DNA of 64,000 nucleotides from Macrostomum lignano (Eukaryota). A model generated the notes under the pieces. It searched no databases. It saw only the letters and a list, made by a program, of their open reading frames with translations, and was not told where the DNA came from. Each line of letters starts with the position of its first letter. Positions within the stretch are counted from its first letter, which is position 1. Made by a program: the position numbers and the translations under genes. Location of the stretch: the NCBI GenBank assembly GCA_002269645.1, contig NIVC01001159.1, positions 38,257-102,256 of the forward strand, read 5' to 3'. Below, piece after piece: positions 41,811-64,000 of this stretch.

Positions 41811-42539
41811 ATGAATCCAGCATTGAAGAAGCACAGCATGGCTTTAGTCAACTCTGCTATTCTCGGTCTCTGCTTGCTGAGCGTCCTGCTCAGTTTCGTT
41901 CCAGCAGGTCGCGCATGCTTTGGCAAATCTCCCAGCTTCAAGGCTACTTACCGCACTACCTTTGATCGCTCTAATCCCCGAACAGAGATGAACTTGAACA
42001 GCATCATCAACGCAAACATTAATGCCAGCAATGAGCAGCTGGCTTCGCTGCTGTATGCAAATGTCAGCAGAGATTTTCCCGGTAGTCACGTCATCGTGCT
42101 CGTCTACAACCCCATCGGCGGCGTGTCGAAGCACGAAAATCTGTTCTGCCCGTTTCAGCTGCACCTGACTCGCTATCGGGCTGAAGGGAAGAAGAACATT
42201 CATATTCAGGTGTCGAAAACAGCGTCTTCAATGCTGACAGAGCTCGGTCAGTGCTCACCACTCAAAAAGCTGCAGCGCAATAACGAGCCACCAGATGCTC
42301 AGAAGTGGATGTCCAGGCTGTGGCCTGCGTTGGACTTCTGCGGGGCTGTGAAGCTGGTTTCGGTCATAGACTATTGGACCAGCGACCTGGCTTACAAGGC
42401 CAGTCCAGGCTCTCTGGCCATCGATGTGGGCTATCACGTCTACACGAGCTACGGAGTCATGGGGCAGTCATTCAGGATTGACAAGAGGCGGACTTGGCGT
42501 ATTGAAAAGCCTGTTCAGCACATTCTTTTGTTTGGGTAG
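41811..42539 (+). CDS. Intronless secreted protein, 242 aa (233 aa from ATG 41838); family uncertain
   Basis: Non-repetitive ATG-to-stop ORF with a hydrophobic signal peptide MALVNSAILGLCLLSVLLSFVPAGRA. The segment LYANVSRDFPGSHVIVLVYNPIGGVSKH recalls the C-terminal domain of rapunzel/SE-cephalotoxin-like proteins (from memory, unverified). Confidence 0.8.
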   Translation: MNPALKKHSMALVNSAILGLCLLSVLLSFVPAGRACFGKSPSFKATYRTTFDRSNPRTEMNLNSIINANINASNEQLASLLYANVSRDFPGSHVIVLVYNPIGGVSKHENLFCPFQLHLTRYRAEGKKNIHIQVSKTASSMLTELGQCSPLKKLQRNNEPPDAQKWMSRLWPALDFCGAVKLVSVIDYWTSDLAYKASPGSLAIDVGYHVYTSYGVMGQSFRIDKRRTWRIEKPVQHILLFG

Positions 42540-43466
42540 ACGGAATGCAATATACCAATATACCAAACTACACCGTGTGTCAGGTCTGTATTCCATAATT
42601 TCCTGAGTTAAAATAGGAAATTATGATAGAAATAAGTAATACGTACTGAGCAACATGTTCTACTTTTTCCATATTATCCATATTCCAGAAAAAGGAAAGG
42701 AATAGATTTTACTTCCATTTTGCCAGAAGTCTCCATTTGTCAGCTCCACTCTGAAACCGGTGGTCAACTTTTCTCAGATCTCAGCCCCAAGTGACGCAAT
42801 TCCGACATGCACGCGACCGCCGTTCCCGTCTCAAATTACAGTTCTGCACTGACAGTAATCTACTGATAGTATAGTAATGCCACAAGCATATACTGGTGTA
42901 ACTGGCCTTACTACTGCAGTAGTTTTCGAAAATTTGTTTTTTGAACCCGACATTTTTTAATGCTAAACTATTTCACCCAAGACGCCAAGAACGAGGATGT
43001 ACGACTGATCAGCTTTAGCACTGCCTAGAGTTGTCGCGGGCTCTCGGTGGTTGGGCACTGAGCTTTGGAATTTTTCGTGCAGCGTTTCTTCAATGCACTT
43101 CACGATCTGCTTTCCCATTGTCTCGCTCTCACTCTGTGCCAAGCTTTTGTTTTGTTGCTCATCCCAGCAGCCTAGAATCGTGAAACCATGGAAAGCACCG
43201 CCTCTCTCTCTTGTCTCTCTTGTATCTCCCACGGACCACTTGGTATCTCCCAGACGTATCCCTAAACGTCTGATCGCGTACCTCCAGCTGTAGTTCCGAA
43301 GTGCTCATCAAGGAGTCACCAAGCAACCAATCCGGTTTATTTTGAGATGCGCAGGTTTTTCAGCGGCGATTGAACTTAATGTTTTCAACTAATATATTGT
43401 TTAAATATTTTTCTATTAACTACGAGCGTATTGAACTTTAAATAAAATCAATCACAGTTAGAAACT

Positions 43467-43577
43467 TTACGGAAACAATAAATAATATAAAAGATTCCTC
43501 TCGCGAATGGGAAGCAACTTCCGGCTTCCGCGACCGGCCTGAATGAAGATCAACACCTTTGGCTTTCCTTGAAGGAC
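43467..43577 (-). pseudogene. Degenerate caspase fragment with catalytic Cys>Gly (QAGRG), lacking p10
   Basis: Translates VLQGKPKVLIFIQAGRGSRKLLPIRERNLLYYLLFP*. The DNA aligns with the LEGRPKAFFIQACRGS segment at ~53890-53940. It is followed by the same 3' flank that follows the intact caspase. Confidence 0.75.
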
Positions 43578-45274
43578 CTACTAGTTTGCATTCCAGTAGT
43601 TTCTGCTGCAGCAGAGATACAGGACTTGCCCCCAAGAAGTTGGCAGGCGGCATCTTGTACAGTTGTGCTGTAATTTTTTTTCTGTGCTCATCCGGCTGTC
43701 TGCTCACCATCAGCAGCCTGTTCAGCGATCGCTGGATGCTGGTTGAAGTGGCTCTGAAGGAGACGGACTACTAGTACACACCCTAACAATTCCCACGCCT
43801 TCACAATTCCTACAGAGTAGCAGAAGAAACCTCCAGCTGACTTTTTATGTATAAAGTGTACGTACGAGCGTATTCAAGTTTCAAGCTGACAGCCGATCTG
43901 AACACGGTATACTGTATACGATTTCTTATCTGACTACTACCAGTAAGCAGTTGAGGTTGCTTGCTCTGTATTTCTGAATTAAATGCCTGCATATTTTATT
44001 TACCAACATGTTGAGACACGTAGAATCAATGCTTAACCATGCATTATGAATTAATAAGCAACGTACATGTGAGCTGCCTTTTAATAGTGGAGTGCGAGCT
44101 TTGCCAAATACCACTGCAGTGTCAGTAGTTATTAATCAAATCATTAATCGAATCTGTACCCTGTCGTTCACAGCATCTGAGAATGAATCGGGGAGGCAGT
44201 TAACATAAACTTGTCTTAGGCTGTGGAGTTTTTACTTTCATGCCGTCTATTTTGAGTACAGCGCAAAGTAGATTAGCAGATTATTTCTACTGTGACGTTG
44301 CCAGTTTAAGGTGGTCCCGAAAAGGGCCGTTGGACTGCTGTTTCTCTATAGTTTCAACCCTTCAGTTTCACCGTTTCAACTAAACTTTTCCATTTGTTTA
44401 TTGCGACGTTTACTTGTAGTAGTGCCCAACGATTTTGTGGCAATTTCTAATTCACTGTATATTTTGCTATCCTCTCTCGCGACCGTATAAAATTGGCACG
44501 ATCGATAATTTTAAGTTCTCTCGCCAGCCAATGAAAACCACTCGTGCTTCGCGCTACGTGCTTCGCCCCTCTGCGCTCCTTTATTAAACCCCCGCCTGGC
44601 GGCGGGCACTCCTCTCTCCCTGTGTGTCCTTGGCCTTGTGTGTGTTTTTGCGTTCTTGTCTGGCTGCCTCGAGCCTCCTTATTTCTCGCCACGGCCCCTC
44701 TGTCTGGGCCAGCCTACTCACACGCTTACTTGACTGTCTCACGCCACGGCTGACGCCAATCTCGCCACTGCTACTCACTGCCTCCACTGTGCTCATTGCC
44801 ATTGCTCACCACGTTACGTCGCCATTGCATCATTCGCCTGTCACTTGACTTCATATCCAAATTATATTCAACCCATTGTTGCAGCCGCCAGTGCCCAGAA
44901 GCTATAGTTTGTGTATTGCCAGTAACAACCAAACCTAATATTGATATTAACAATAAAAACAACTACGGCAGTTTCCTGCCTTTATTGCCAAGTGCTCCGC
45001 TACACAATCCGCTTTGCAAGAGTTGACTTCAACTTATTTTGGGACTACGACTTACTGCAACGCTTGTTAAAACGGCCCTTTTAAGGGCCACAGCCATAGT
45101 TAGCCGCTACGCCAACATCAATAATCGTGACACTACTTTCATTTTTTTACTTCCTTTTTGCATTTTCATTCAACAATACGCTCTTGTTCGATTTCCTAAA
45201 TGTCTTTGCTTTCCATTTAGAGTTTTATACTTGAGTAACGTCGGAACGAGAATGAATTCAGACAATAAATGAAA

Positions 45275-45480
45275 CAATACTACAGCCACAGTACTGTTAC
45301 CTGCAAAAACCTGCTAAGGCAAGTTGGTCATCTATCTATCTTCCATCCGGAATGCTCCCATACTCAAGTCCGCCTTTCAATACTACAGCCACAGTACTGT
45401 TACCTGCAAAAACCTGCTAAGGCAAGTTGGTCATCTATCTTTCTTCCATCCGGAATGCTCCCATACTCAAGTCCGCCTTT
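45275..45480. repeat. 103-bp direct tandem duplication
   Basis: CAATACTACAGCCACAGTACTGTTACC at 45275 and 45378. Confidence 0.92.
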
Positions 45481-46106
45481 CTATCTGTTTCATAGAAAGT
45501 CTCGTCCCACATTTGGCTCATGGAAGTCTGTTTTGTCAGGCAGTTCTTTACGTTTGGTAGCAAATACTCGTTACATGCAGCTCGTGTTTCGTTTAAATGT
45601 ACTCATATATACGCATGTGAGCAGTCCTGCTCATCGGCTCACTTTTCCCTGTAATTTTTGCATCCGTCTCGTATGCATCTCAGGCGTACTGTAGCTATTG
45701 CCAACTGCTCATCAAGGAGTGACCAAGCAAAAAGCAATCTAATTTTGTCTGGATGAGCAGTATTTCAGTGGCGACAGAACTCAAACAAAATACTGGTTTA
45801 TTATTTAAAAGCTTTTGATTAACTACTTTAGTTTAGAAGAATTAGTCACAGGGTTATAAACTTTACACGGAAACGAAAAATATCATGAAAATAAAATGAA
45901 ACGATAATTGAGTACTTGAAGGTTAAGCAGATTGACTTGAGTAGACATCAGAGTCAAATAACCATTAGTCATATTCAGAAGGTAACACGATCGGTGTTTG
46001 AACAGCAGAAAAGTGTCCACATTTATCAATAAAGCTGCCAATACAAGTATATCAAATATTCCATCATTAAAGACAGCTCCGTGACATCGCCGCTACCTGA
46101 AGAAAC

Positions 46107-48311
46107 TCACAGCGGCTTCAAAGGCTCGTCGAAGAACTTCTTGTCTTCGTACCTGAAAAAGAAGTGCAGAGTATAAACTCAGAGTGTGGATTTCAAATTG
46201 CACGATAGTTCTTACTGCCCATTTATACTACAAAAATTAAAAAATTCCACTCAGAGCAACTGCAGTCAGCTGCTCAAAATTCAATGATGAGCAATAATGC
46301 TTTTCAGCGATTTCGAGCATAGGTCAGAGAGACATTCTCAGTTGCCATGGAAACTCACCCACGCAGCAGCTCAGCCAGCTCGCTGTTTTCCGTCTGTGTG
46401 GCCAAATCCAGCGCAGTCCTGTCGTCTCTGTCCTTCAGGCTCCAATCCGCCCCTGAGTCCAGCAGAACCCGACCGACTGCGGCGGCGGTAGCGGGGGGCG
46501 CAATGATGGCTGCCAGCATGAGGGGAGTCAATTCACAGTATCCCCGATCAGTCCTGGCATTGGCGGAGGCTCCGGCAGCCAGCAGTGCGGAGGCTGCGGC
46601 AGAATTGCCACCGAAGCCTGCCCAGTGCAGGCAGCTGTCAGACCTTGAATCCACACAGGTGGGGTCACCCAGCTGCACCAGCTGCTCCCACAGAGCCTCA
46701 TTACTGCACGAGCTGTTCCGAGCTGCACACATCAACGCGGTGACACCACATCTGTCAGGCAGGTCGCAGCTGCTGCGGGTCGCCGCTCGCCGCAGTCCAG
46801 CCCAGTCGCCGGCCTCAGCCAGCCGCTTCATTTCCTTTCGATCGACCTTCTCCTGCAAAGGCGAGCGGGAAATTTGAGCACCGCTGCTCTGCTGCAGCTG
46901 CATCGGCACCGCAGATGCCGCTCACCTGAGCTGTCAGGCCAGAGATATAGGCATATTTTTCCACCACCAGCCGCATCTCCCTGCAACCGTAAAATGAGCA
47001 GCGAATTTGCAATTTTATTTATCAGGCAACTACCGTTGCCAAAATAGAATTTACTTTAGTAGGATGAAATTTTCATGATAAATTTAGCAAATACGAGTAG
47101 AAAATCCTAATTATCTGAGCTGCTCGCAGATGAAGATTTTAGGAGAACTGCAGCAGCTCCGCAACAATCAGCATTGGCGAGAGCGCCTATGACTTCTCAC
47201 ACGCAGCTCATTTTCCATTTCTGCAGCACGAGTTTCCTTCCATTTCACAATGTCTCACAAAGCACTCACGCACAGCCTCCCAGTTCTCCATCTGCAGCTC
47301 GACCCACACACTCTCACTGCACACCGAGGCCCTACAGCTTCCATTCTCGACTGAGATCAACCGGACCCCCATTGGCTGAGAGGCTCCCGCCCATCAAGCA
47401 GTCAGCCAGAGACAAGCTCAGCTGACTGGCTCTGATTGGCTGGCCTGAGACTGCAGCTCTGGCCACCCCAGCCGAATGCTGCAAAAATTGATGGACACAG
47501 CAGCGAACTGCTCACTCACCGCTCGATGTAGCTGGCCAGCTCTGAGTAGCCGCTGAGTCTCGCCAGGTCCGACGCCGTCCGACCCTCGCAATTCTGCAGT
47601 CCGAGCAACCGCGACCTCTTCGAGTTTCCGTGCTGCAAGCATTCATTAAACTTCAACTGCCTGAGCAGGTGCAGCAGGTGCTTGGCGCATTTCCAGCTGC
47701 CAGTCCGCGCCGCCTCCATCAGCGGAGTGGCGCCGTTGTCGTTCCGCAGCCACTTCGCATCGAACCACAGCAGCGTCAGCAGCCGCAGGTGGTCCCGCCG
47801 GGCTGCCAGGTGCGCAGCCGTGTCGCCGTTCGCGTCAGCCGCCTTGGGGTTCGCGCCCAGCTTAAATAAGTACAAGATGCACTTTTCAGTGTGCACGGGA
47901 GTCTCAGGAGCGTCGGCCACCAGCATGAGGACGGTCCGACGATTTGCATCAGCGCTGGTGACCAGCTGGCGCGTTGCCAGCCGCCGCACCTGGCCGAAGT
48001 CACCTCGGATGACGTCGTGGGCGAGAGTCTGGAGATCGGCTGGTGAGTCTCCGACGCTTGCCCGGTTGCTGGGGTCCGGCTGAGTGAGTTCCTGCAACTG
48101 TAATTAAGCACTAAAGCTGCACATTGAAACATGTGAGTGAGAACCAAAGATATTTTTCAAATGGATTGCTTTAACTCACAAAAAATAATATTTCAAACAA
48201 AAGAATGCTACAAAACTTACATTCTTACAAATAATCACCCTATGTACAATATAAGGTAAAACTTACCTTGTAATCAGAATAGTATATCACCTTAGAGGCC
48301 GCACTGCCCAT
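46107..48311 (-). CDS. Ankyrin-repeat-only protein (~405 aa), paralog of the ankyrin-caspase without the caspase exons
   Basis: Exons 48311-48267 (MGSAASKVIYYSDYK), 48097-47520, 46980-46926, 46852-46359, a possible 12-nt microexon at 46227-46216, and 46152-46111, with read-through to TGA at 46109-46107. ANK motifs: GDTAAHLAA, GATPLMEAA, GVTALMCAA, TPLMLAA, DRTALDLA. The 3' end is uncertain. Confidence 0.75.
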
Positions 48312-48599
48312 TTTTAAAGACTCGACCAGTTAATCAACTGGAAAATCAAAATGCATGAGCAGCTGCGTCAACTCAACAGATTATATAGCGGCCTCAGAAG
48401 ACATTGTCAGAGAGATGCACTGCCTGCGCCTCATAGGCTGAATGCAAACCCAGTGTCTCTGTTTCTGATTCTCTGCCGTACAGAATGCATACTACTCACG
48501 GCAGTAGAAGTTAGATTGCAGATATTATTTTCACTTTCGCATAATACTTTTTTCTGAATTTCTCTGTTGTAATACATGGCATACAATGATAAAACAACA

Positions 48600-49350
48600 A
48601 CAACAAAATACGTGCTCCGCGTCACAGTGCGCGCCTCAAAGGCAGGTCGCGAATGAACGCCCCGCCGCCGACCGAATCTGGGGCGCCGGCGTTAGCCAGC
48701 AGGCAGTCGACGAATCGCCGAGTGCGGGCTTGCCCCCCCCCACCGGTAGGGTGCCTGCAGCGTCATTAGCAGCACCTCCTGCATCGGTTGTGGGAAATAC
48801 GTTCGGCTCGGATGATGTGGAATGCAAGCTGGAGTCGCCGACGGCGCAACAGGTCGCTTGGACGAACCAGGCCGTCATGGTGATAGAAAGCTGCGTTGGT
48901 CACTCGCTCGTTGCCGATCCTGAAGGCAGCGCTTAGCAGGTCAGCGTGCGCCGCGTCAACTTGTTGCTTGCGCAACTCCATCAGCGTCCAGGTCTCGGCG
49001 TTGTACAACAGGACGGTCTCGATCACCGCCTGGAAAAACGCCACCCTCTGGCGGTCAGGTAGGCCCTTGGATTGCAAGACTGCCCTCACAGAATAAAAGG
49101 CAGCCCATGACGTCAAGAACTAGACCGCCGAGGAAGTCGAACTGCTGACAACACGAAAGCTCCGTCGCCGGGCCATCTGCGCCTTGACTCATAAATGCAA
49201 CCTCGATGTCGTCCGGCACGCAGGGCACAACGGTTTTCTGTGTATTGACCACCAGACCGACAGCTTGTACAGTTGTTTCTGGGCGCCCTCGACCGTTCAG
49301 GACAGCAGGACGAGATCGTCAGCGTAGCCAAGCACGCTGAGCCGCCTCTA
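48600..49350 (-). mobile_element. 5'-truncated, decayed RTE-type non-LTR retrotransposon
   Basis: RT motif LGYADDLVLLS followed by an in-frame TGA, frameshifts, and the RTE-typical C-terminal stretch AFFQAVIETVLLYNAETWTL...RRRRLQLAFHIIR. A short (TTG)n run near 48595 may be the tail. Confidence 0.85.
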
Positions 49351-51424
49351 TCGTTGACGTCACCGCAACAGTTTTTTTTAAAATAATAAACGATAAACAA
49401 GAATACGTGTCTATTGTGTTGAGAATGCACCGTGCCTGGAGTCGTGTGACCGTGTAGAGAGGTGGGTGGATGGACAAGAGACGGGGAGGGAGAGAAGAAT
49501 GGCAAGCCGAAAAGATGAGAGCGAGGGAGAAGAATTCTGATGTACCAAATCCTATAATAACTATTATACTATCTAAAAGTGCAAGTTTGGTGAAAGCAGG
49601 TTTCTAGTTGTGAAATGAGAGAGCATTATATTAAAGCCAGCCTGCAAAAGCTTATCGAAGAAACTACCTGGCATATTATTCTGCATTAACTTCATGGCCT
49701 AACTAAAAATTATTTTTATAAGCTTCGTTTTATAATTGTGTGCTGTAAAACGGTTGCTTACAGAAAAATACGTCTTCTAAATCTGGCTTTACTCAAGTTT
49801 ACACGGCTTTCAGGAATTAACAAAATATAATTTCATTCTACTGCAATATAAAATGATGGCGAAGTTTGTTTATTATCCACAGGATTTAAAAAACTACGCC
49901 ATCAAGAGCAAAAAACGACTGTAAACTCAATGATTGTACGCTCGTATAGAATTGTTTGGAGATGCAATCAACCGTAGAAACCTGTTAACACATGGATCTC
50001 ACTTATGTAAAAAATGCAATACCCAGTTGACATCGTTTTAAAGAGAATTAATTTGACTATTTGAGACGATAATTACATGTACGTCGTACGCCACTCCTCT
50101 GCAGAGGACTTGAATCTGAGACTGGGATTAAAGGTGACCCTTAATTACCTCCCGTCGCCATCTTTGGTTGTTATCATCTCGGAAGCGTCAGCGCTGGAGG
50201 TCGCGGTTCATCACCGGATGATTGCGTCACCAACACCGCGTTTCAGCAGCCACTCTTGCATCATGCGCATCTTTTATTAGTACATGGATATAACTGCCTG
50301 TCTGCCTGTTTGTCTTGCTTTATTCTTTTTTAAAGGGGCGCAACGTTTTAATTGCGCTACAACTTTTCAGCAGTTTCTAGAAGAGTCTGTAAGGTGCTCT
50401 AGAATCTCCTTAGCAATACTTGCTAAATGTCATCTTGTACTTTTAGTATGCATCTCTATTGTATATCTCCAAGAGGCGGGCAGGAGGGGGCATGTCCCTC
50501 AGTAAATGCTTCGGGGGGACATTTCAATGCTTTGTCCCCCCGCACCAGCTCTGTGACCTGTTATGTAAATCAAGAATTTTGTTTCAGGACACCAAAATGC
50601 GTATCTGCGGCGCTAAAATGAGTGACTGAGGTGCCAAAATGAGTGACTCAAGTGGAAAATTCTTCACGCAGGAAAAGAGACCAGTGTATCTCCTAAAGAA
50701 ATAGTTCTATCGGATCAATGCCCAGCTCTATCAGTAAATAATTACACCAATATTCTTTCAAAGAAGTTGCGTAACTCGCTGCTTATCTCGTTTCAGAAGA
50801 CATCAAACCCAGTACACAAAAACTGCCAACCTGACTTAACAATAGGCTGAGCTGCTTCTACGAGTAAATCTAAAACTGTCCTTCATTCAAAACCAAAGAA
50901 ATTCATTTTGCCACTATCTATGCGCTCGTAAATATAGAAACTGAAACACGCAAATGCAGCAATGCTGTTTATTGAGACGAAGGGGCACATGGCACGCCAC
51001 AGCAGCTCCAGATTAAAGATTAAATGCAGACTGAAAAATAAAGGCAGAGAGACGTACAAGTATGACCGTGCGAACTCAGAAAAGAGTAAAATGCAGGGCT
51101 GAAACAGAATGCGGGCTGTGGTTGATGTGTGGGTGAGAAACTTCAAAAGAAAAGAGCGGAAAAGAGAGGGAGTCTATCTAGCAATATTTTTGAAACTGAA
51201 AAAACAGTTTCTGATAAATTTAGAAAACGAAAGCCAGAGCGTCTATAGACGGTGAGTGGAATATTAAAATAGACGATTAGGCATAAACAGAGGTCTTCAA
51301 AACAAAATTAAGTTGCCAAATCTTTTACACGCTACTTATGTTAGAGTCGCAGTTCGTTGCCCTGCATTTTGATGCAGTATCCAGATTGAATATCCAGAGC
51401 ACAGAATATCACCCAGAATGGTCA

Positions 51425-51570
51425 TTCACAGTGACAGGAGCAATGTGTGAACAGCAGTGACCGGAACAGTATGTGAACAGCAGTGACAGGAGCAGTGTGT
51501 GAACAGCAGTGACAGGAGCAGTGTGTGAACAGCAGTGACAGGAGCAGTGTGTGAACAGCAGTGTGTGAAC
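51425..51570. repeat. 24-bp minisatellite, ~6 copies
   Basis: Unit GTGTGAACAGCAGTGACAGGAGCA. Confidence 0.9.
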
Positions 51571-53528
51571 GGCAGAATCGCCAGTCCTGGCTGCATGGTG
51601 CAGGCAACTGTTAGCCAATACAATCGCCAAATCCACTTATTGGTCAATGCAAATCTTCAAAATCAAAGAAATATACAGGACATCTATAGCTAGGTGACAT
51701 TGTTCCCAACTCTTGTGCATAATTGCTTTCGTTAGCGGTTCTAAAAAACAATTCTTCAACAGCTGTAGAATAATTGAGTCTAAAAATTTCAATAAATAAG
51801 CATGAATAAGAGTTCCGTTGAAAAATTTATATGCTAGTCTCACTTATAGTAAATACAAAGTTTGTCTGATAATGAATAATGAATTATGATAACGAAATAC
51901 AACGTAAAGACGAGCTACTCACTAAGCAACATGTTACATTTTCCACCCCCGACACGTGCGGCCAACTTTTCTCACATCTCAGCGGTTTTCCTCTCAACTG
52001 TGGGTGATGCAGCTTCCGTCACAATAAGTCCCCAGTTTATTAACCTGATGAGGAGAGACAGGAGAGCTATGACCACAGAGTTGGATTAAGCTCGACCACT
52101 TTCAGTTCTCATGCAGACCTCATGAACGGGTCTCATAAGCAAAAACGTTCTGAAATTAAAAATTGCATGTATGAGTAGATCTCATCTGAGAGTTTTTTTC
52201 TCTATTTGATATCTATCTCAATTGCTTCGATCCTTTGGCCCTCTTAATACATGTATACGTATTATACAGGCTGCCAATCGGGACCCAAAAACCATGCTAC
52301 TTGTAAATTACTGTATCAAGAGCGAGAACGAGAATTTAATCACCTGTAGCACTGCCTGGAGTTGTTTCTTGGGCTCTCGGTGGTTGGGTGCTCATATATG
52401 GAAATTTCCTTTCTCTTGCTCTCTCACTCTGTCAAGCTTTTGTTTTATTGCTCATCCCAGCAGCCTATAAAACCGCGAAAAGCACCGCCTATCTGTATGC
52501 ACCTGGCTCAATGCTAGCTTCTACTTATAAGAACATCGAACTTTTTGCCCTATCGTCCATTTATTTCTTGCATTTTCTGCAAGCCGTTTGCATTTTGCAG
52601 CAAATTTGCGAGCCGTACTTGTCCAGCTAGTGTTTCGTTTAGCTATGAGCGTGAGCAGTCCTGCTCACGGCTCTCTTCATCAGTTTCTCGTACATTTGCA
52701 CGTGTGTTAATTAACAGAATTCATCAATACACCCTCGCTTTGACCACTGACCAGATGTTCCACCTTTTCTGTGTAATCCTTCGTCTCGTCTCTTGTTTAT
52801 ATCTACGCATATTCCTAAACGTTCTAGTTGTCAATTGCCCATAAATGAGTCACCAAGCAAACAACCAGTCCGATTTTGTTTGTAATGTGCAGTTTTTTAG
52901 AGGCGATAAACCTTTAACTACGAGTAACTACCAATTTATTGTACAGAAAACTTGTGATTAATAATTGAACTTTAAATAAGGTAGACACGGTGTTAGAAAC
53001 TTTAAATATAGGAACACAAAAAACAATTAAAAAATCAACCGTAACTGAGTAGCTAAAAATTTAAAGCAGATTAACTTGAGTAGACGTTGGAGCAGATCAA
53101 CAAGTAGCTTACGTGAGCTCTTGGGCTGAAGGGGCAACCCAGCAGTCGGGAAAGCAAAAACTTGAATAAATAATAAAAAAACACGTCGGATCAAAAAAAA
53201 CTTATAAATATAAAAAAATTGCGGCTAAATATGGATAGGCACGGCACACAAAACAGAAGGCTGCAAGTACAGGAAAAGTTCGGTTGCTTGAGTAAACTGG
53301 AGGACAGTGTTTCAGCAGCAAGAACGATTGTTTGTCATAAGATAAACATATCGATTACAAATTTTTAGCTAATTTTCGTGGCTACTGGGCTACATTTGCT
53401 TTGGGTTACAAAGCTGCTACTTTCAATTCTAATTCTAACTCTTCTCAAAGCTACTACTTAGCACGTTGCTGAGTGAATATATAGTGTTGACGTCTCAGAA
53501 ACCGCTAAACAATTTCATTGAGCAGCTT

Positions 53529-54762
53529 TTAAACTTTCTGAGCTTTTTCTGGATCGAAGCTAACAAGTCGTGAAAGCTGGTCGACCTTCTGTGGCACAAC
53601 ATGGTACAGGTTGTTTTTCACCCGAACAGGGTTTTCCTGCAAGTGGCCGCTCACCTTGGTCATGATGGTACTTAGGTCGAGCTCACGGAAGTTTTTCTCG
53701 ATGAAATCGCAAACAGTCTGCACGTACAGCGAACCCGTGTCGATGTTTCTAAAGGCGGCTGAGCCTGGAGTGTTGGCGTAGCAGAGCAGAAAGTCGCTCT
53801 CTGCAGGACGGACCGCGGTGTTGTACACCGGAGCGGGTGCTTCGTCCGTTTCCTCGCGAGAATTGGGAGCAACAACAGCGCGGTCGAGACGGCTTCCGCG
53901 ACAGGCCTGGATGAAGAACGCCTTCGGCCTGCCTTCAAGTCTGCGGCAGACAGAGCTCTGCGATGCGATGACAGTGGCGGTGAGGTTTTTCGTCTTAGAA
54001 ACATGGTATACTGTCTAGTCTCCGCTTCTTTGATGAATTAGATTGAAGGCGTGAGACACGCCTGTTTCAGAACTCAATTCAGAACTCAAAATGAGATTTC
54101 GGCTCTCTCATGCGCTTGTATATTTTTCCGCTAGCGTTCGCTGGCTTCAAGCCCATACCTGTAAAGCGCAAATCCCCCAACATGTCTATGAAAATATTTT
54201 ACGTTAATAAAATGCACTACATGTATTTGTCATCAGTGCCACAAAAGTCTACACAGACTTTTGTAAATGCGAAAACGAGTTCCTACACTCAATATTACCT
54301 TTCGGCTCAATACTATACATTTCTATTCAGAGCCCTTTTTAATATTCCTGTCCTTGCTCATATCAAGATAAAAAACTATCAACAGGATATTCTCGGCGAT
54401 AGCTTACCTGGAACCTGTCTGTCAGCTTTCGAATTTCGTAGGGACAGCCGTCCCTACCGTAGATGCAGTCGTGGCTGCCGTGCGCCATCAGGAAGCAGAC
54501 AAAGCTGCCATGCTCGCCAAGGTCCGGTGACTTTTTTATCTCATGGAGGAAATCATCCACCTGCTCAGCGGTAAGATCCTCTTTTACCTTGACGATGAAG
54601 CGCAGACTCTCGAATACCTGTTTCACTCGTTCAACATCACGAACTGAACCTTTACGCTCGGTATGACTGAATGTGATGTCACTTCCGGAGTCGTACTTGC
54701 TGATGTTGATGATCAGACAGTAGCCTTGCGGGTCCGTCACTGGATAGAAGTCTCCCTCCACC
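53529..54762 (-). CDS. Caspase (peptidase C14A) catalytic domain exons of the ankyrin-caspase
   Basis: GYCLIINISKY, ERKGSVRD (S1 Arg), FVCFLMAHG (catalytic His), GRPKAFFIQACRG (catalytic Cys; QACRG at 53895-53909), and p10 PAESDFLLCYANTPGSAAFRNIDTGSLYVQ. One phase-0 intron at 54407-53994. Confidence 0.95.
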
Positions 54763-57700
54763 CTGGAATACAGTGAATGCTCAATACATTTTTTACGAGC
54801 TCGTACTTTAACAGCGCAAAACATAAAATTTAGTATCACCTTGACAGCTGATGGCGAGCGGTTTTGACACGCATGGCTCCTCCGAAGTCTCCAAAAGTTC
54901 TTTTAAGTGAAAAACAACAATTTGACTATGCTGTTACTGAATATTTGTGGCATGCTTTGCCTGATGACTAAATAAAACTTCGACTCACAGATCTGGTTCC
55001 TCATCGCTTGGTATCTCGTCATCAGCATGGTCTGTAAAAACTTTTCGTCTGAAAAGGTAAAAAAGCCATGCAGTTTTCGTAGCTGTGTGCTGTAGCTGTG
55101 TGTTGTAGCTGTGTGCTGTAGCTGTGTGCTGTAGCTGTGTGCTGTAGCTGTGTGCTGTAGCTGTGTGCTGTAGCTGTGTGCTGTAGCTGTGTGCTGTAGC
55201 TGTGTGTGCTGTAGCTGTGTGTGCTGTAGCTGTGTGCTGTAGCTGTGTGCTGTAGCTGTGTGCTGTAGCTGTGTGCTGTAGCTGTGTGTGCTGTAGCTGT
55301 GTGCTGTAGCTGTGTGTGCTGTAGCTGTGTGCTGTAGCTGTGTGTGCTGTAGCTGTGTGCTGTAGCTGTGTGTGCTGTAGCTGTGTGTGCTGTAGATGTG
55401 TGCTGTAGCTGTGTGCTGTAGCTGTGTGCTGTAGCTGTGTGTGCTGTAGCTGTGTGCTGTAGCTGTGTGTGCTGTAGCTGTGTGTGCTGTAGCTGTGTGC
55501 TGTAGCTGTGTGTGCTGTAGCTGTGTGTGGTGTAGCTGTGTGTGCTGTAGATGTGTGCTGTAGCTGTGTGCTGTAGCTGTGTGCTGTAGCTGTGTGTGCT
55601 GTAGCTGTGTGCTGTAGCTGTGTGTGCTGTAGCTGTGTGCTGTAGCTGTGTGCTGTAGCAGTGTGCTGTAGCTGTGTGTGCTGTAGCTGTGTGTGCTGTA
55701 GCTGTGTGCTGTAGCTGTGTGCTGTAGCTGTGTGTGCTGTAGCAGTGTGCTGTAGCTGTGTGCTGTAGCAGTGTGCTGTAGCTGTGTGCTGTAGCTGTGT
55801 GTGCTGTAACTGTGTGTGCTGTAGCTGTGTGCTGTAGCTGTGTGCTGTAGCTGTGTGTGCTGTAGCTGTGTGCTGTAGCAGTGTGCTGTAGCTGTGTGCT
55901 GTAGCAGTGTGCTGTAGCTGTGTGTTGTAGCTGTGTGCTGTAGCAGTGTGCTGTAGCAGTGTGCTGTAGAAGTGTGTGCTTAGTGTGCAGTGTCTGCGCT
56001 TGAGCTGAAGAAACTCACCGTGGCTCCGAAGACTCGTCAAAGTACTTCTTGCCTTCGTACCTGAAATTGATTTGGATAGTTTGAATCAAGACTTTGGCTG
56101 ATATTTTGTTTTCACGTGAGTATTTAGGAACTCAACAGCAGATTTCTGATTTCAAGATGGGATTCAGGGTCTCGAAACAAACTCATTTTTTACATAGATT
56201 TTATATTAAGCCGTAAATTTTGAATTTTATCTTTAAATTGAAGATTTTGCTTAGATTTATCAGCAATAAAGTTATAAAGTTATCAACTGGCAATCTGCAG
56301 TCAAACTGCACTGCAAACTTCCTCAATGCAGCTCAGTCAGTCCCTGCTGCCCATTTGGACTACAATAATTAAAAAATTCCCACTCAGAGCAACTGCCGTC
56401 AGCTGCTCAATATTCAATCATAAATTACAGCAATAGTGTTTATCAATCGGGATAAATCAAAGTCAAAGAGAAATTCTCAGTCGCCATGGAAACTCACCCA
56501 CGCAGCAGCTCAGCCAGTTCGCTCTTTCCCTTCTCTGTGGCCAAATCCAGCGCAGTCTCGCCGTTTATGTCCTTCAGGCTCCAATCCGCCCCTGAGTCCA
56601 GCAGAACCCGACCGACTGCGGCGGCGGTGGCGGGGGGCGCATGGATGGCTGCCTGCATGAGAGGCGTAGATTCCATTCCACTCGTGGCATTTGCGGAGAC
56701 TCCGACAGCCAGCAGAGCGGAGGCTGCGGCAGAATTTCCAGCGCTGGCTGCGTGGTGGAGGCAACTTTTATCATAAAAATCTGCCAATGTAGGGTCTCCC
56801 ATATGCACCAGCTGCTCCCACAGAATCTCATCACAGCAGGACCTGTTTTGAGCTGCCCACATCAACGCGGTGCAACCATATTGGTCAGGCAGGTCGCAGC
56901 TGCTGCGGGTCGCCGCTCGCCGCAGCGCCGCCATTAAGCCCTTATCGGCCAGCCGCCGCAGTTCCTGTCGATCCGACTTCTCCTGCAAAGGCGAGTGGGA
57001 AATTTGAGCACAGCTGCTCAGTTGCAGCTGCATCGCCACTGCAGATGCCACTCACCTTGGCTATCAGGCCGGAGATAAAGCTATGTCTATCCACAACCAG
57101 CCGCATCTCCCTGAAACAGCAGAATTGAGCAGCGAATTTGCAATTTTCTCAAATCTGGCAACTCACATAGCTATATTATAATAAAATTTTATGATAATTT
57201 TCATGATATTTGTCAACAGAAATTCTAAATAATGTGAGCTGCTCGCGAATGGACTTTCCAAGAGCCCTCAAGCACAGCCTCCCAGTTCTCCATCTGCAGC
57301 TCAACCCACACACTCTCACTGCACACCGAGGCCCTACAGCTTCCATTCTTGACTGAGATCAACCCGCATCCCGTTGGCTGGAAGGCAGCTCTCGCCCATC
57401 AAGCAGTCAGCCAGAGACAAGCTCAGCTCAGCGAACTGCTCACTCACCGCTCGATGTAGCTGGTCAGCTCTAAGTGGCCGTTGCGCCTCGCCAGGTCCGA
57501 CGCCGAGTGTAAATTGCGATCGCACAGTTTGAGTAGCTCCGACCTCTTCGAGTCTTCGTAGATAGTGGACTCATTGAACCTTCTCTGCCTGAGCAGGTGC
57601 AGCAGGTGCTTGGCGCATTTCCAGCTTCCAGTTCGCGCCGCCTCCATCAGCGGAGTGGCGCCGTTGTCGTTCCGCAGCCACTTCGCATCGAACGATAGCA

Positions 57701-58321
57701 GCGTCAGCAGCCGCAGGTGGTCCCGCCGGGCTGCCAGGTGCGCAGCCGTGTCGCCGTTCGCGTCAGCCGCCTTGAGGTTAACGCCCTTCTCAAATAAGTA
57801 CAAGATGCACTTTTCAGTGTGCACGGGAGTCTCAGGAGCGTCGGCCACCAGCATGAGGACGGTCCGACGATCTGCATCAGCGCTGGTGACCAGCTGGCGC
57901 GTTGCCAGCCGCCGCACCTTGCCGAAGTCACCTCGGCTGACGAGCTGGGCGAGAGTGTGGAGATCGGCTGGTGAGTCTCCGACGCTTGTACGGTTGCTGG
58001 GGTCCGGCTGAGTGAGTTCCTGCAACTGCAATGGAGGCACCTGGCTTTTAGAACCAGAAAAAGGGTATAGAACTCCGGGGTATTGTCGTTTTTTATCCTG
58101 TTGAATGAGGTTAAGGATTACACGTCGAAATGGTCGAGGTAGATTCCATGGAAGAGAAATACGTGTCCATTATGAGCGCTACTGTCGCGACTTATAATAA
58201 GGATACGGTCTAAAGCTACAGACCTACAGTTTATAGTTCTTGTTTTACTGCAAATGTACCAACAGCTAATAGTAATTTATTAGCTCACCGTGTTATTCAG
58301 AGAGGAGGCCGCACTGCCCAT
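53529..58321 (-). CDS. Ankyrin-repeat caspase: myristoylation-type N-terminus, two ANK clusters, acidic linker, caspase p20/p10; 9 exons, ~715 aa
   Basis: Exons 58321-58289, 58040-57448, 57110-57056, 56982-56498, 56060-56019, 55048-54989, 54899-54840, 54762-54408, 53993-53529. All introns are GT-AG and the phases chain without a stop; total 2148 nt. The exon 2 acceptor could also be 58025 or 58019 (same phase). Confidence 0.78.
55079..55980. repeat. 13/15-bp minisatellite in an ankyrin-caspase intron
   Basis: Unit GCTGTGTG(TG)CTGTA. Confidence 0.95.
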
Positions 58322-58786
58322 TATTCGCACTTCAACCAGTTTTTCTCCACTCAGGCCGGAAAGCAAAATGCATGAGCAGTCGACCCTAGGCAACAGATTA
58401 TATATCGCCCTCAGAAGACATTGTCAAAGAGATGCCTGATTGGCCTAATGCAAAGCCGGTGCCTCGGTTTAGGGTTTATCTGTCATACAGAATGCATACT
58501 ACTTACGGCAGTAGACACCCTCTAGGCAAATGAAGATCATCGTTGCAAAATTATTTTTTATTTCGTACAAATCAACAAATTTTCTGGCTTCTTCCACTAA
58601 AATTGCATGATTTTTTTTGGTAAATGCAAGACTTACCTTCTAAAAATAAGCACAATGTTTGTAATTAGTGACAGACACACAGAGACTAAGAGCTGAAATA
58701 ATGGAAATGAGGAGAGATATGCCTCTAAGGTTTTGTCGTTACGAGTATATACATGCCATTGCTTGAAATGGCGCAAAATGAGTTAT

Positions 58787-59551
58787 TGCATTGCCAAAAT
58801 GAGTGACTGCTGTGCCAAAATGAGTGACTGCTGTGCCAAAATGAGTAACAGCTGTGCCAAAATGAGTAACAGCTGTGCCAAAATGAGTGACTGCTGTGCC
58901 AAAATGAGTGACTGCTGTGCCAAAATGAGTAACAGCTGTGCCAAAATGAGTAACAGCTGTGCCAAAATGAGTGACTGCTGTGCCAAAATGAGTGACTGCT
59001 GTGCCAAAATGAGTGACTGCTGTGCTAAAATGAGTGACTGCTGTGCTAAAATGAGTGACTGCTGTGCCAAAATGAGTGACTGCTGTGCCAAAATGAGTGA
59101 CTGCTGTGCTAAAATGAGTGACTGCTGTGCTAAAATGAGTGACTGCTGTGCCAAAATGAGTGACTGCTGTGCCAAAATGAGTGACTGCTGTGCCAAAATG
59201 AGTGACTGCTGTGCCAAAATGAGTAACAGCTGTGCCAAAATGAGTAACAGCTGTGCCAAAATGAGTGACTGCTGTGCCAAAATGAGTGACTGCTGTGCCA
59301 AAATGAGTGACTGCTGTGCTAAAATGAGTGACTGCTGTGCTAAAATGAGTGACTGCTGTGCCAAAATGAGTGACTGCTGTGCCAAAATGAGTGCCTGCTG
59401 TGCCAAAATGAGTGACTGCTGTGCCAAAATGAGTGACTGCTGTGCCAAAATGAGTGCCTGCTGTGCCAAAATGAGTGACTGCTGTGCCAAAATGAGTGAC
59501 TGCTGTGCCAAAATGAGTGCCTGCTGTGCTAAAATGAGTGACTGCTGTGCT
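58787..59551. repeat. 21-bp minisatellite (AAAATGAGTG family), ~36 copies
   Basis: Unit AAAATGAGTGACTGCTGTGCC. Confidence 0.96.
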
Positions 59552-59998
59552 GTGCAACAACCCCAGGATTTCCAAAAATATGGGTAACTTTTTGGTTTGG
59601 AACTGGTGGCTTTGCACCCCTTACGCCATAAAGTCCAAGGCAACTCCCCTTCTGCAGCTATATTGTTGGTATAGAAATTTTTTTCAAAAATGCAGGACCC
59701 ATTAGAAGTAATTTTTCTGACTCTGTTTCAGCCGTGTTACCCATAGGCTGTTTTTATTAAAAATCATCAATAACAGTATTCGCATGCATTGCTTCATTAC
59801 AAAAGACATTTTGAAAGAGGAGAGGATGCGGAATATGATTTTCATATTCTAGTCTAATCTTTCTTCTGCTTAAGAATTTCTTGGCTATCATAGTACTCGA
59901 AATAATCAATAATGATTTATTAAACATGCCCTAATGGCCAGATGTGCAACCGACAGCTCAGCCGCAGCTATTGCGCGGCGCATCTGAAGGTTGCGTAC

Positions 59999-60213
59999 GG
60001 CTGTTCAATCCAAGGACTGGGGGGGGGGGGTCGCCACACATACCCTCAATTACCCCAGCTAATGCTCGCACCCATTTTACAGCTGGGTGAACTGAAGCAA
60101 TGCAGAGTTAGGTGTCTTGCTCAATGACACAAATTGTTCCGAGTGGGATCAGGAATCGAACCCCCGACCTTCAGGCCGTGAGTCCGACGCTGTAACCACT
60201 AGGCTACAACCCC
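59999..60213 (-). mobile_element. tRNA-derived CORE-like SINE, second copy
   Basis: The reverse complement aligns over ~215 bp with 26045-26270. Confidence 0.82.
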
Positions 60214-61285
60214 ACTCTTCAAATACACCAAACCGTTTAACTTCCACCTTTGCATAGCTCTGTGCCTGCTTGGAAATATTTCAAACAGGAAAAGGGGTCA
60301 GTTTATCCCCTAGACAAAGAATTCTGGAGCAATGCTGAGCTCTGCTCTTTCAAACAAGATCGGTGCTTTTTCGTTTTGGAAGACATCAAATGCAGTACAG
60401 AATTTCAGCTATTCAGGCTGACCGCATCTGCACAAACTCTGCCACTTTGCTTAACAAAAATGCTGCATGAGCTGCTCTAAAACTGAGCCGTCTTTCAGAA
60501 CAGAAAAAATATTTTTGCCACTAAATATAGAAACTGAAACACGCAGTGCAGAATGCTGCTTATAGAGGGGCATGGCAGCTGCGCACACTGCAGCAGCTCC
60601 AGATTCGAGTTTAAAGACAGACAATTGCATGCAGAAGAGAGTTAAATGAAGGGGCTGAAACACACTGGGGAGGTGCAGTGGAGGTGTAGAAGATAAAATT
60701 CGAATAGGAAAGAGTGGAGAAGAGGAGGAAGACTGAATGGCCTTGTTTTTGAAATGGAAAAATAATTCACTGATAAATTTAGAAACCGAAACACAGAGCG
60801 TCTGTAGGGGTGAGTTGAGGGTGAAAATAGACGATTGGTACAGACGGCTGTAATAAATATATAAAATTGTCAAATCTTTACTTCACCTTCACCTTTAATT
60901 TACTTCAAATCCAGATAGAATGTCCAGATAAAATAGCCAGATAGAAGACTCTAAAATGAGGGCGCCAAAATGAGTGACTGAGGCGCAAAAACTAAATATT
61001 GACAAGCTCAATTTACAAAAATATGGGTAATTTTTTGCTTCGAACTGTTGGATTTGCATCGCCTCCGCCAAAAAATTCATGGCAACTTCCCTGCCGATGT
61101 TTTACGAGCGTACTGTTGGTATGAAGATTCTTATCAAAGATGACTTATTAAAGTCATCACTTCTTCATTGCAGAAGACATTTTGAAAGAGGAGAGGATTC
61201 GGATTATGATTTTCATACTCTAGTCTAATATTCCTTCTGCTCAAGAAATTTTAGGCTGTCATAGTAAATCAATAATAGTTGATTA

Positions 61286-61423
61286 CATTTTACAGCTGGG
61301 TGAACTGAAGCAATGCAGAGTTGAGTATCTTGCTCAAGGAAACAAATTGTTCCAGTGAGATTGGGACTCAAACCCTCGACCTTAAAGTCGTGAGTGTGAC
61401 GCTCTAACAACTAGGCTAAAACC
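61286..61423 (-). mobile_element. tRNA-derived CORE-like SINE, 3'-truncated third copy
   Basis: Head and core only; lies within the local duplication of the 59.5-60.9 kb segment. Confidence 0.78.
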
Positions 61424-64000
61424 TCATTAAATACACCAAACCGTTTAACTTTCACCTTTGCATAGCTCCGTGCCAGTTTGGAAACATTTCAAACAGGAAA
61501 AGGGGTCAGTTTATCCCCTAGAGAAAGAATTCTGGAGCAATGCTGAGCTCTGTTCTTTCAATCAAATGCAGTACAGAATTTCAGCTATTCAGGCTGACCG
61601 CATCTGCACAAACTCTGCCACTTTGCTTAACAAAATATGCTGCATGAGCTGCTTTAAAACTTCAGAACAGAAAATATATATTTGTCTGAATGGCCTTGTT
61701 TTCGAAATTGAAAAATAATTCTGTGATAAATCTAGAAACCGAAACACAGAGCGTCTGTAGGGGTGAGTTGCAGGTTGAGGTTTGAGGTTGCGGTGGAGGT
61801 GGGGGGAGAGAAAACTCCAGATAGAATGAGTCGAAAAGACGAGGGAGGCTGAATGGCCTTGTTTTCGAAACTGAAAAATAATTCACTGATAAATTTAGAA
61901 ACCGAAACACAGAGCGTCTGTAGGGGTGAGTTGGGGGTGAAAATGGACGATTGGGCATAAACAGAAGGCATTAAAATTATTTAAATTCCCAAGTATTTAC
62001 CACACTACTTATAGTATTAGTCGCAGTTCATTATTGATCAAATTTTGTAATTTTGTTTAACCTCTGACTTGAAAAACATTACCCTGCATCTTGATAGATT
62101 ATACCGATACGAGCTAGAATATCCAGATAGATTATCTAATAGAAAACACAATCGGCTAAGGACTTCGTCACTCTGTCCAAATTCGGTTGTAGCCATAGAC
62201 ATGGATAGTGCTCGGCCTTCTTAAGCCCTCGATCGGTGGTAGTCGTCAGGCCTAGGAGCAAAGAAATCAATCACTTATTGAATACTCTGGCCTCTCAATT
62301 CTATCAGATGGTCTGCCCTCGGGCAGCTGAGATGTGGGCAAGCAGAACAGCACAGACCCTGTGGCTAAGAGAAGACAGCAAGAGACAACCAGCAGGGAGA
62401 CTTTTAAAGGTAGAGATTAGCTAATCCGGAGATTTGGCTAACCCATGCCGCCACCAAACTGGCTCTAGAACTAATTTGCAAACTACAGCTGTTATAAGTG
62501 ACACTGCTGGGACTGGATCGCTGTCCAATCTAAAGATTTAAGGGTCGCTAGCAAGTCTCTCTACACCGCTCAGTGTACTATTACATTATTGACTTCCCGT
62601 GAAAGTACATCTACATGCATTTTGACGCTTCTCCACGACTCTAAAGAACGCATAGCGCTGAATGGGGTTTTGCAATAGACAATTTTGACTGAAGAAAATC
62701 CGACTCGTGCGTTCTTAGATGACCTATCCCTCGACACATCCATCAGATGCCATCACCCACATAGTCTGCCCGAGATAGACCTCTGACACCAGTGAATCTT
62801 CCTACTTCTGACTAAGCTGGAGCACTCAGAGAGAGCAACGCATCCAGTTAATGCAGACAAAATTCGTACTCATTTCTAACTGAGTAGTTTCATTCTCCTC
62901 TCCGTATTTCACGCACTCATGGTTCGAGCCCTTTTGGAAATATCTCAAACAGGAGAATTCTATAGGCTTGCCAACATGAGAATTTGTGTCCTAAAACTAT
63001 TTTACATGGCCCAGAGCAATGCCCATCTATTTTGGAAAGCGCTGTAGATTAAAACACAATGGATGAGCCAGTGCTTTTTCAAGGCCGAAAGAGCCTGTAT
63101 ATGCAATGCACAGTCTTCTCTGCAAAAGCTCTGCCCTCACTTTTGTTCAACAATGGCATTAGAAATAGGCGAACTGAGCAAATGCTGGGCAGCTGCATGG
63201 CTGAGTAATGAATTCAGGGTGCTCAAAACTCCACTCAGTTGTACGGGTGGCCAATTCGTATGGGCCCGGCTCAAGTGGCGGGCTTCTTGTGGTCATTGCC
63301 AATCTGTCTTTAGTCTCAGCAGGGTCTGTTGCAAAGCGTTTTTCTACCTGCATGTGGAATCTGTGCCACCCACCTGCTTAATACTCGCGACTGATGCAGG
63401 TGTAACTAAATAAAAAACTTGACAAATATGCATTTAGCATACTTTAAGTATCGATTCTCAATCCTTCAACTTTCTACGAGAAAACTGACATTTAATTAAA
63501 ACCGTTTGTGTTTTGGTGCTGAGCTTATAGTAGGATAAAGGGCGGGGCAGGCTTTAAAAAAACAGATTATGAGAACAGGGGCCCGTGCTATACAGCACTC
63601 TTAACTGCTTAACAAGCTTGCATGAAGTCGAAAATCGTGGAAGAGACTGAAGTACAAGGACGGACCGTCTGCAGAGTACGTAGCTCCGGTATGTGCTGCG
63701 ACCCCACTGCGTTCCCAAGGCTTCAAAAATAAAGATATGACAACGCGGGCACCGCAATCTCGGGCATTGAGTCTCTGAGGTGCGCAAACAAATATATGCT
63801 AAATCTCTTCATCAGCTTGAGCAGTCTCACAAAAGTGTACAGAGAAGATTGAGTGCTGGCTTGCATATATTAAATATATAAAATACAAAAATCTGTTCCG
63901 AAATTTCAAGGATATGAAACAAAAATAACTCAAAGCATAGAGAAAACACAGAAATTTCAGAAAAAGAGAAAAGGACAGTATAGTATTAGGAACCACCTCA

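Follow-up and report, generated by a model that had tools for sequence, protein, structure and literature searches.

A tandem array of ankyrin-caspase units in the free-living flatworm Macrostomum lignano and its probable place in a gene family under birth-and-death turnover

Introduction

Flatworm caspases with an ankyrin (ANK) prodomain are said to have been first noted in Schistosoma, by Lee et al. in 2014. Horkan et al. (2024) surveyed these proteins, described them as sister to the DED caspases and as confined to parasitic flatworms, and credited Macrostomum lignano only with a caspase bearing a kinase-like prodomain (PMC11463336). Here we analyze a 64,000-nt stretch of the M. lignano genome (contig NIVC01001159.1 of assembly GCA_002269645.1, positions 38,257 to 102,256; hereafter the window), where three ANK-caspase-derived units, which we call B, A, and C, stand in tandem, all on the minus strand. 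A preliminary description of this stretch had proposed an independent origin of protease-plus-decoy logic around an ankyrin prodomain; the ankyrin prodomain itself is no new origin, as flatworm ANK-prodomain caspases were already described (PMC11463336). Like those proteins, the complete unit B joins an N-terminal ankyrin prodomain to a caspase domain nearest the DED-bearing (caspase-8/10-type) group in a flatworm host; here, however, the host is free-living, the paralogues are many, and the same ANK head is also found on kinases. No parasitic-flatworm ANK caspase was among the search matches to the proteins studied here. On balance, we consider it rather likely that the region is part of a lineage-specific M. 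lignano tandem family under birth-and-death turnover, and this family is fast-diversifying and probably sensor-like.

Other systems with comparable parts are known. CARD16, CARD17, and CARD18 (the COPs), which lie beside caspase-1, are near-identical recent copies, more than 90% identical to the parent CARD. Unit A is similar in that it encodes only the prodomain and belongs, with the complete caspase gene next to it, to a cluster of tandem duplicates but, unlike the near-identical COPs, it is 74% identical to the head of B and differs from it at 21 of 24 binding-surface residues. cFLIP (CFLAR), in turn, is a catalytically dead paralogue of caspase-8, and an M. lignano protein encoded by a second assembled copy of our locus, P0002, is likewise full-length and prodomain-bearing, its catalytic Cys having given way to Gly (QAGRG) and its protease domain having changed at an accelerated pace; P0002, however, keeps the catalytic His, and in the window only 85 nt of the gene remain. 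NLR leucine-rich repeats and lamprey VLRs, finally, are diversified immune receptors with variable repeat surfaces, and DARPin libraries are their engineered analogue. The ANK-head family resembles these in its conserved scaffold, variation at ligand-contact positions, lineage-specific tandem arrays, rapid turnover, and death or stress effectors, although it uses ankyrin, lacks NACHT/NB-ARC domains, and has its effectors fused directly.

Results

The window is a minisatellite-rich eukaryotic sequence with a G+C content of 29-57%, and the best protein matches to its genes are all from M. lignano. Self-BLASTN, a repeat search, and Pfam bear out what the preliminary description said of the tandem array, of the domains that each unit holds, and of their lying on one strand: the gene bodies at 46207-48508 and 56339-58515 are 74-91% identical and lie about 10 kb apart, and Pfam finds ANK repeats in A and B and a caspase domain in B only. 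By self-BLASTN, the 3' flank is present in three copies (42988-43492, 45689-45946, and 52325-53085; 69-79% identity), which match pairwise at 75-79% (42988-43492 with 52325-52907), 69% (45689-45890 with 43288-43492), and 70% (45698-45946 with 52828-53085), with E-values of 1e-7 to 1e-17. The 5' flank is common to A and B (50929-51325 with 60522-60879, 68% identity; 51114-51358 with 61786-62032, 74%), as is a 21-nt minisatellite in their upstream regions. These flanks lie where they had been described earlier, except that the flank of A starts at 45689, the previous start at 45500 being about 190 nt too generous. A and B diverge by 10-28%, and we therefore regard them as paralogues and not as collapsed alleles. 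The spacer between A and C has no match among the paralogous loci compared, and neither Rfam families nor tRNAs turned up in scans of the window. Coordinates of all features are given in Table 1.

Table 1. Coordinates of the three units and associated elements (positions in the window)
Feature	Position	Strand	Basis or remark
Gene B, complete ANK-caspase, 9 coding exons, 698 aa	53529..58321	-	All introns GT-AG
B exons 1-4	58289-58321, 57448-58025, 57056-57110, 56498-56982	-	Gene model
B exons 5, 5b, 5c	56019-56060, 54989-55048, 54840-54899	-	Gene model
B p20 exon	54408-54762	-	Gene model; His codon within 54477-54485
B last exon	53529-53957	-	Gene model; QACRG at 53895-53909, p10, stop
B promoter block	58330..58520	-	Alignment of A, B, A'; CCAAT box 58436-58445, TATA box TATATAATCTG 58394-58404, conserved initiator region
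13/15-nt minisatellite, B intron 5	55067..55990	-	Repeat search; begins just past exon-5 donor
B 3' flank, common with A and C	52325..53085	-	Self-BLASTN, alignment; conserved AATAAA 52935-52940
B 5' flank, common with A	60522..62032	-	Self-BLASTN, repeat search; internal ~1.2 kb tandem duplication and dispersed SINE-like repeat
21-nt minisatellite upstream of B exon 1	58648..59600		Few copies at 50571-50659 upstream of A; further array 9531-10608
Gene A, ANK-only, 405 aa	46107..48311	-	Open frame, GT-AG sites, Pfam ANK only
A exons	48267-48311, 47520-48097, 46926-46980, 46359-46852, 46107-46152	-	Gene model
A promoter block	48320..48510	-	Alignment of A, B, A'; TATA box 48377-48387 conserved, CCAAT box changed to CCTAT (48430-48439)
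A 3' flank, matching the distal part of the B and C 3' flanks	45689..45946	-	Self-BLASTN, alignment; AATAAA 45797-45802
A 5' flank, common with B	50929..51358	-	Self-BLASTN
Unique 2.1-kb spacer, A to C	43581..45688		Holds 103-nt tandem duplication 45275-45480
C, last-exon relic of QAGRG (Cys-to-Gly) ANK-caspase	43495..43580	-	tblastn, alignment to P0002; QAGRG codons 43527-43541
C 3' flank	42162..43494	-	Alignments; aligned poly(A) signal mutated to AATATA 43393-43398

Evidence on the history of the array came from the public contig NIVC01003438.1, which belongs to an independent assembly, carries a second copy of the locus, and matches the window at 98.9% identity over 51583-63268 and at 97.6% over 48081-50594; our comparison covers that contig on either side of its middle 14.8 kb, where no gene is called. 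Because the match holds at 97.6-98.9% over 16 kb, the adjacency of B and A is confirmed. At about 48.1 kb identity falls from 97.6% to 92.3%, and the match ends at 47107, beyond which NIVC01003438.1 enters a satellite array; intron 2 of A is continuous and family-typical on either side of this point, and 91% identical to intron 2 of B. In the contig's copy of B, a GAG codon of the p20 exon has become TAG (RFIVKVK-stop; L001 ~8685, corresponding to window ~54580), which explains why its protein, P0001, has only 498 aa. This stop-bearing copy would yield an ANK-plus-stub protein identical to the head of B. At the position of C, the contig encodes P0002, a full-length, transcript-annotated ANK-caspase of 731 aa with QAGRG; gene models of the Mlig_3_7 assembly were derived from RNA-seq (PMC5730564). 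Since the two copies of the locus have thus lost different members, we read the array as the outcome of birth-and-death turnover, and these reciprocal losses match what the preliminary description's own alternative, decay of duplicates by birth and death, predicts.

The relic C itself was recovered by a tblastn search with the caspase exons, which returned one extra piece at 43521-43574(-), reading LQGKPKVLIFIQAGRGSR. The QAGRG fragment has true nucleotide homology to the caspase last exon; it is, however, an 85-nt, frameshifted remnant that leads directly into the 3' flank. Compared to the last exon of P0002, C carries three small indels (+3, -8, and -2 nt) followed by a 1.44-kb deletion into the 3' flank, and all sequence upstream of the last-exon remnant is gone. 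The 3' flank of C agrees at 98% identity with what follows P0002 in the other assembly. In P0002 the catalytic Cys was lost by a TGT to GGT change and the catalytic His is retained; its caspase domain shows 24 private amino-acid changes, compared to 8-12 in its siblings, and the linker ETD is lost. P0019, from another assembly, likewise reads QAGRG. The Cys-less caspase reported earlier is therefore real as a homology and as a full-length protein, which is found only outside the window, in P0002 and P0019, and not as a gene of this array. Of the features expected of a pseudogene, C shows indels, deletions, and the AATATA change; in A the CCAAT box alone is altered, with the reading frame, the splice sites, the TATA box, and the AATAAA all intact.

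B is the unit with all parts in place. Its N-terminus, MGSAASS, reads as an N-myristoylation-type pattern; the ankyrin blocks are encoded by exons 2 and 4, with a short exon between them, an acidic, Asp-rich linker by exons 5, 5b, and 5c, and the p20 exon and last exon carry the AHG histidine and the QACRG motif plus p10, respectively. Exons 5b and 5c, although small, are backed by proteins P0001 and P0002, and a 7-exon model that was also in frame was dropped as it lacks them. Pfam identifies Ank_2 and Peptidase_C14 domains (PF00656; E 8e-21 in the p20 exon and 4e-19 in the p10 exon), and the caspase domain matches human caspase-3 in the PDB with an E-value of 1e-34. In this alignment AHG, QACRG, tERkG, and aafRn of B pair with SHG, QACRG, R64, and R207 of caspase-3, and the His-Cys dyad and the S1-pocket Arg/Gln/Arg of caspase family C14A are present. 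By its p20/p10 domain and these residues, B reads as a C14A caspase that looks catalytically competent. The closest relatives of its caspase domain outside Macrostomum are DED-bearing, caspase-8/10-like proteins, in what is a similarity ranking and not a phylogeny. The ANK module of B matches that of the transcript-based model P0001 (BOX15_Mlig007583g1) at every residue (100% identity); a figure of 92.7% obtained for exon 4 by tblastn was an artefact of a high-scoring segment pair that ran into the intron. The 13/15-nt minisatellite (CACAGCTACAGCA-like) of intron 5 also follows exon 5 in loci L002, L003, and L007; because caspase and kinase paralogues alike carry it right behind that donor, the repeat is old. 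Translations of it open a few database entries, P0061 and P0063 among them. Upstream of the gene, the tandem duplication within the 5' flank comprises 60073-60517 and 61286-61684, and the short dispersed repeat, resembling a short interspersed element (SINE), occurs at 59999-60213 and 61286-61432, with an inverted copy at 26037-26252.

A, in turn, is structurally intact as an ANK-only unit: it keeps the TATA box, initiator, ATG, MGSAAS motif, every GT-AG splice site, a 405-codon open frame, and an AATAAA whose position is conserved in A, B, and paralogues. Its last exon stops at a TGA inside the former exon-5 donor, GTGAGT, and no caspase or kinase exon was found downstream of A in the window. 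Homology between A and B breaks 10 nt past that donor (46097), at the edge of the intron-5 minisatellite, and restarts in the distal 3' flank, so that a single deletion of about 2.9 kb explains A; the alignment implies that this event removed exons 5b-9 and the proximal part of the 3' untranslated region (UTR). The AlphaFold (AF2) model of A is a two-block ANK solenoid (pLDDT 92.4, pTM 0.91) whose predicted fold resembles rigid two-domain ankyrin proteins. The ANK head of A is 74% identical to that of B and 82-84% identical to those of ANK-kinase paralogues. Only 3 of the 24 binding-surface residues are common to A and B, and at most 8 of 24 are shared with any paralogue, a pattern unique to A. 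No annotated protein is identical to A among the protein matches. Two other gene structures were considered and rejected. Splicing exon 5 of A to the QAGRG fragment, to make one gene of A and C, would be in the wrong phase, lacks a usable acceptor, and would enter a frameshifted exon; as the 5' part of an ANK-kinase, A would lack any kinase exon in the window, and its exon 1, promoter, and flanks resemble those of the caspase units. Upstream of exon 1, an open reading frame (ORF) at 48769-49119(-) looks reverse-transcriptase-like, with no Pfam match at E<=0.01, and the stretch that holds it, 48081-50594, is the one 97.6% identical to the public contig.

Whether A is under selection had been left to a comparison of nonsynonymous and synonymous substitution rates (dN/dS, or omega). 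A carries 19 non-synonymous and 10 synonymous private substitutions, and its omega of 0.67 is not distinguishable from 1 or from that of its relatives; a value near or above 1 is seen in full-length members of the family too, so this test cannot discriminate. The open frame of A is likewise weak evidence of selection, since there are only 29 private substitutions and, in a stop-survival simulation, a neutrally evolving frame with that many remains open in 34% of cases.

A wider pattern emerges from the rest of the family. In M. lignano the same two-block ANK head (70-84% identity) is found in front of a caspase, of an STE-group kinase, or of nothing, and the kinase domain of the ANK-kinases has ASK1/MAP3K5 and other STE-group kinases as its best PDB matches. 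Caspase-bearing, kinase-bearing, and ANK-only heads intermingle in a neighbour-joining tree, where A falls among the ANK-kinases and not with B. Genomic mapping placed tandem units at four further loci. ANK-kinase units, likewise in tandem, lie in L003 (39042-39955, 50770-51689), L004 (16363-17351), L005 (14864-15801, 21549-22522), and L006 (12941-13917). Some annotated ANK-only proteins have kinase exons downstream in the genome: the coding sequence of P0004 stops at the in-donor TGA of exon 5, and kinase exons lie 0.6 kb beyond it. P0008 (L007), which stops at the same in-donor TGA, has no effector exon within 10 kb. Every member, in fact, has an exon 5 that closes in phase 2 ahead of GTGAGT, so that retention of intron 5 leads to an immediate in-frame TGA (L003 50149-50151, L007 13158-13160, A 46107-46109; in B, past the donor at 56019). 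ANK-only products thus appear to be a recurrent, transcript-annotated form of the family, one of which A would hard-wire. The caspase next closest to the ANK caspases, P0096 (BOX15_Mlig000293g2), has a Ras/Roc GTPase domain in front, a further unusual prodomain in this species.

Within the ANK exons, pairwise dN/dS is about 0.5-2 for all pairs, full-length pairs included, and change is unevenly distributed. Exon 2, which encodes the first ANK block, is almost invariant across paralogues. For the second block, we compared 21 paralogues at 20 ankyrin contact positions (positions 2, 3, 5, 13, and 14 of four repeats), where entropy reaches 2.34 bits versus 0.56 elsewhere in the block (permutation p<1e-5). 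The dN at contact positions is 0.80, fourfold the dS of 0.20 at non-surface codons, and each of the 21 paralogues has its own surface pattern in exon 4, rich in aromatic and charged residues. We found no published description of the M. lignano ANK-caspase/ANK-kinase family or of its surface hypervariability.

Discussion

The history that we favor for this array, as one part of a tandem family that gains and loses members, would start from an ANK-caspase unit with a TATA promoter, a first exon with an N-myristoylation-type MGSAAS start, a conserved first ankyrin block in exon 2, a second block with a hypervariable binding surface in exon 4, a linker that is acidic and rich in Asp, a p20/p10 domain of caspase-8/3 type, and a 3' UTR running to a conserved AATAAA. 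B would descend from it with all parts kept. A would have arisen by the deletion described above, with its 5' breakpoint at the edge of the intron-5 minisatellite, which would have placed the distal 3' UTR directly after what was left of intron 5 and made the frame end at the TGA of the old donor. The C paralogue would first have lost its catalytic Cys and then, in this copy of the locus, have been deleted almost entirely. As to how B might work, we infer from motifs, and from the analogy with initiator caspases, a myristoylated ANK head acting as a ligand-recognition module, where clustering by ligand would gather the caspase domains and lead to proximity activation through dimerization and self-cleavage at linker aspartates, for instance between the D and the E of EETDE. 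A is most likely a recent, dispensable by-product of turnover; it would make permanent an ANK-only product that other members can make by retaining intron 5, and any action it had would probably go through the conserved first ANK block and not through mimicry of the recognition surface of B.

We acknowledge that several observations sit uneasily with this account. The exons of A and B are 85.6% identical while their introns are 72% identical, with 1 in-frame indel in the former and 15 indels in the latter; selection on A would explain this, and so would gene conversion from functional paralogues. The CCAAT box is kept in B and in A', the corresponding unit of the other assembly, and reads CCTAT in A of the window, a change that may weaken the promoter. 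Unit A' on NIVC01003438.1 has no called gene, retained-intron transcripts are common as an assembly by-product, which is a caveat on the transcript-annotated ANK-only products, and the junction between A and C is not reproduced in NIVC01003438.1, which is about 30 kb longer between A' and the common 3' flank and includes P0002 there. This last point, together with the abrupt drop in identity at about 48.1 kb and its loss at 47107, would suit an assembly artefact, in which the 3' part of A, the spacer, and C result from a mis-join or collapse of haplotypes or homeologues of this neopolyploid genome, the true locus being more like the longer contig. Redundancy is, in fact, known from the Mlig assemblies, where blocks of 95% identity or more total 180 Mb, and in Mlig_3_7 it stems from recent polyploidy (PMC5730564). 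Intron 2 of A, however, continues across 47107, so it is the other contig that departs there, into satellite; the adjacency of B and A is independently confirmed; and the indels and mutated poly(A) signal of C are signs of real decay and not of a join. The concern, raised in the preliminary description, that the units might be collapsed or mis-joined haplotypes can thus be set aside for A and B but not for the junction of A with C, where the signs of decay and the continuous intron argue for a real variant, and we consider an artefact very unlikely.

The protease-plus-decoy system originally proposed, in which an ANK-only A and a Cys-less caspase are kept beside B to regulate it, appears improbable to us. 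Such logic is possible but unsupported for A, and inapplicable to C in the window. A does adjoin B on the same strand, about 5 kb downstream, and is structurally intact, with a promoter and a poly(A) signal; the other copy of the locus holds a full-length, transcript-annotated paralogue with QAGRG; ANK-only products recur across the family; and the conserved first ANK block could serve as a shared, head-to-head interaction surface. ANK proteins are moreover known to bind caspases, as in the case of Caiap (PMC5662874) and of DARPins (as cited in PMC11463336). C, however, is dead in the window, the make-up of the array differs between the two copies through reciprocal losses, the omega of A is not distinguishable from 1, and A has no identical annotated protein. 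The comparison of A with CARD16/17/18 also fails, given that its head is nearer to the ANK-kinases than to B and that the two have so few recognition-surface residues in common. A could also be an ANK sensor or adaptor in its own right, without an effector and with a separate ligand, acting in trans with effector-bearing paralogues via the first block, in a hypothetical sensor/helper arrangement, and not as an inhibitor of B. Its unique surface barcode, confident fold, and family-wide conserved first block, as well as the true ANK-only locus L007 of P0008, point in that direction; against it, its private substitutions lack a clear selection signature and its CCAAT box is mutated, and we give this possibility little credence. 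A broader proposal would see the whole ANK-head family as an ankyrin-based innate-immune or stress receptor system, in which a myristoylated module under diversifying surface selection is mounted on a caspase-8-like protease or an ASK1-like MAP3K, while ANK-only forms (hard-wired, as in A, or obtained by retaining intron 5) and Cys-less forms act as built-in regulators, in a separately evolved, NACHT-free route to a sensor-effector-decoy arrangement. We advance it tentatively, as it is more doubtful than not, by a good measure.

For the decoy claim, the value of this work is mostly corrective, and the array is better read as turnover. ANK-prodomain caspases have so far been presented as peculiar to parasitic flatworms; the locus shows them in a regeneration model that is free-living and open to transgenesis. 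The family-level pattern is, however, a more interesting lead than the locus itself: one ankyrin head, swapped between a death protease and a stress kinase, varies on its binding surface across a large family. That ankyrin repeats serve as the sensor of an initiator caspase becomes a testable hypothesis in M. lignano, where natural ANK-only and Cys-less variants can be used as controls.

Neighboring sequence

Outside the array, long minisatellite arrays occupy 810-4616, 6712-7648, 9531-10608, 15582-16277, 21391-22318, 30119-32279, and 39158-40650, and the window is unusually dense in such repeats, which result in spurious ORFs of up to 1268 aa. A 242-aa ORF at 41811-42539(+), convergent to the array, has a hydrophobic, signal-peptide-like N-terminus and no Pfam match, and lies inside the region where the window and the other assembly agree at 98% identity. 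Upstream of P0002, two ORFs of 575 and 512 aa (L002 1301-3028 and 3968-5506) are both absent from the window; the former looks, from its sequence, like a piggyBac-type transposase, and the latter carries no family assignment. Finally, window ~32900-41570(+) is syntenic, at about 90-92% identity, to a Sema-domain gene that lies beside P0002 on the public contig and, because identity around B is 98-99%, the likeness between the two copies of the locus is a mosaic.

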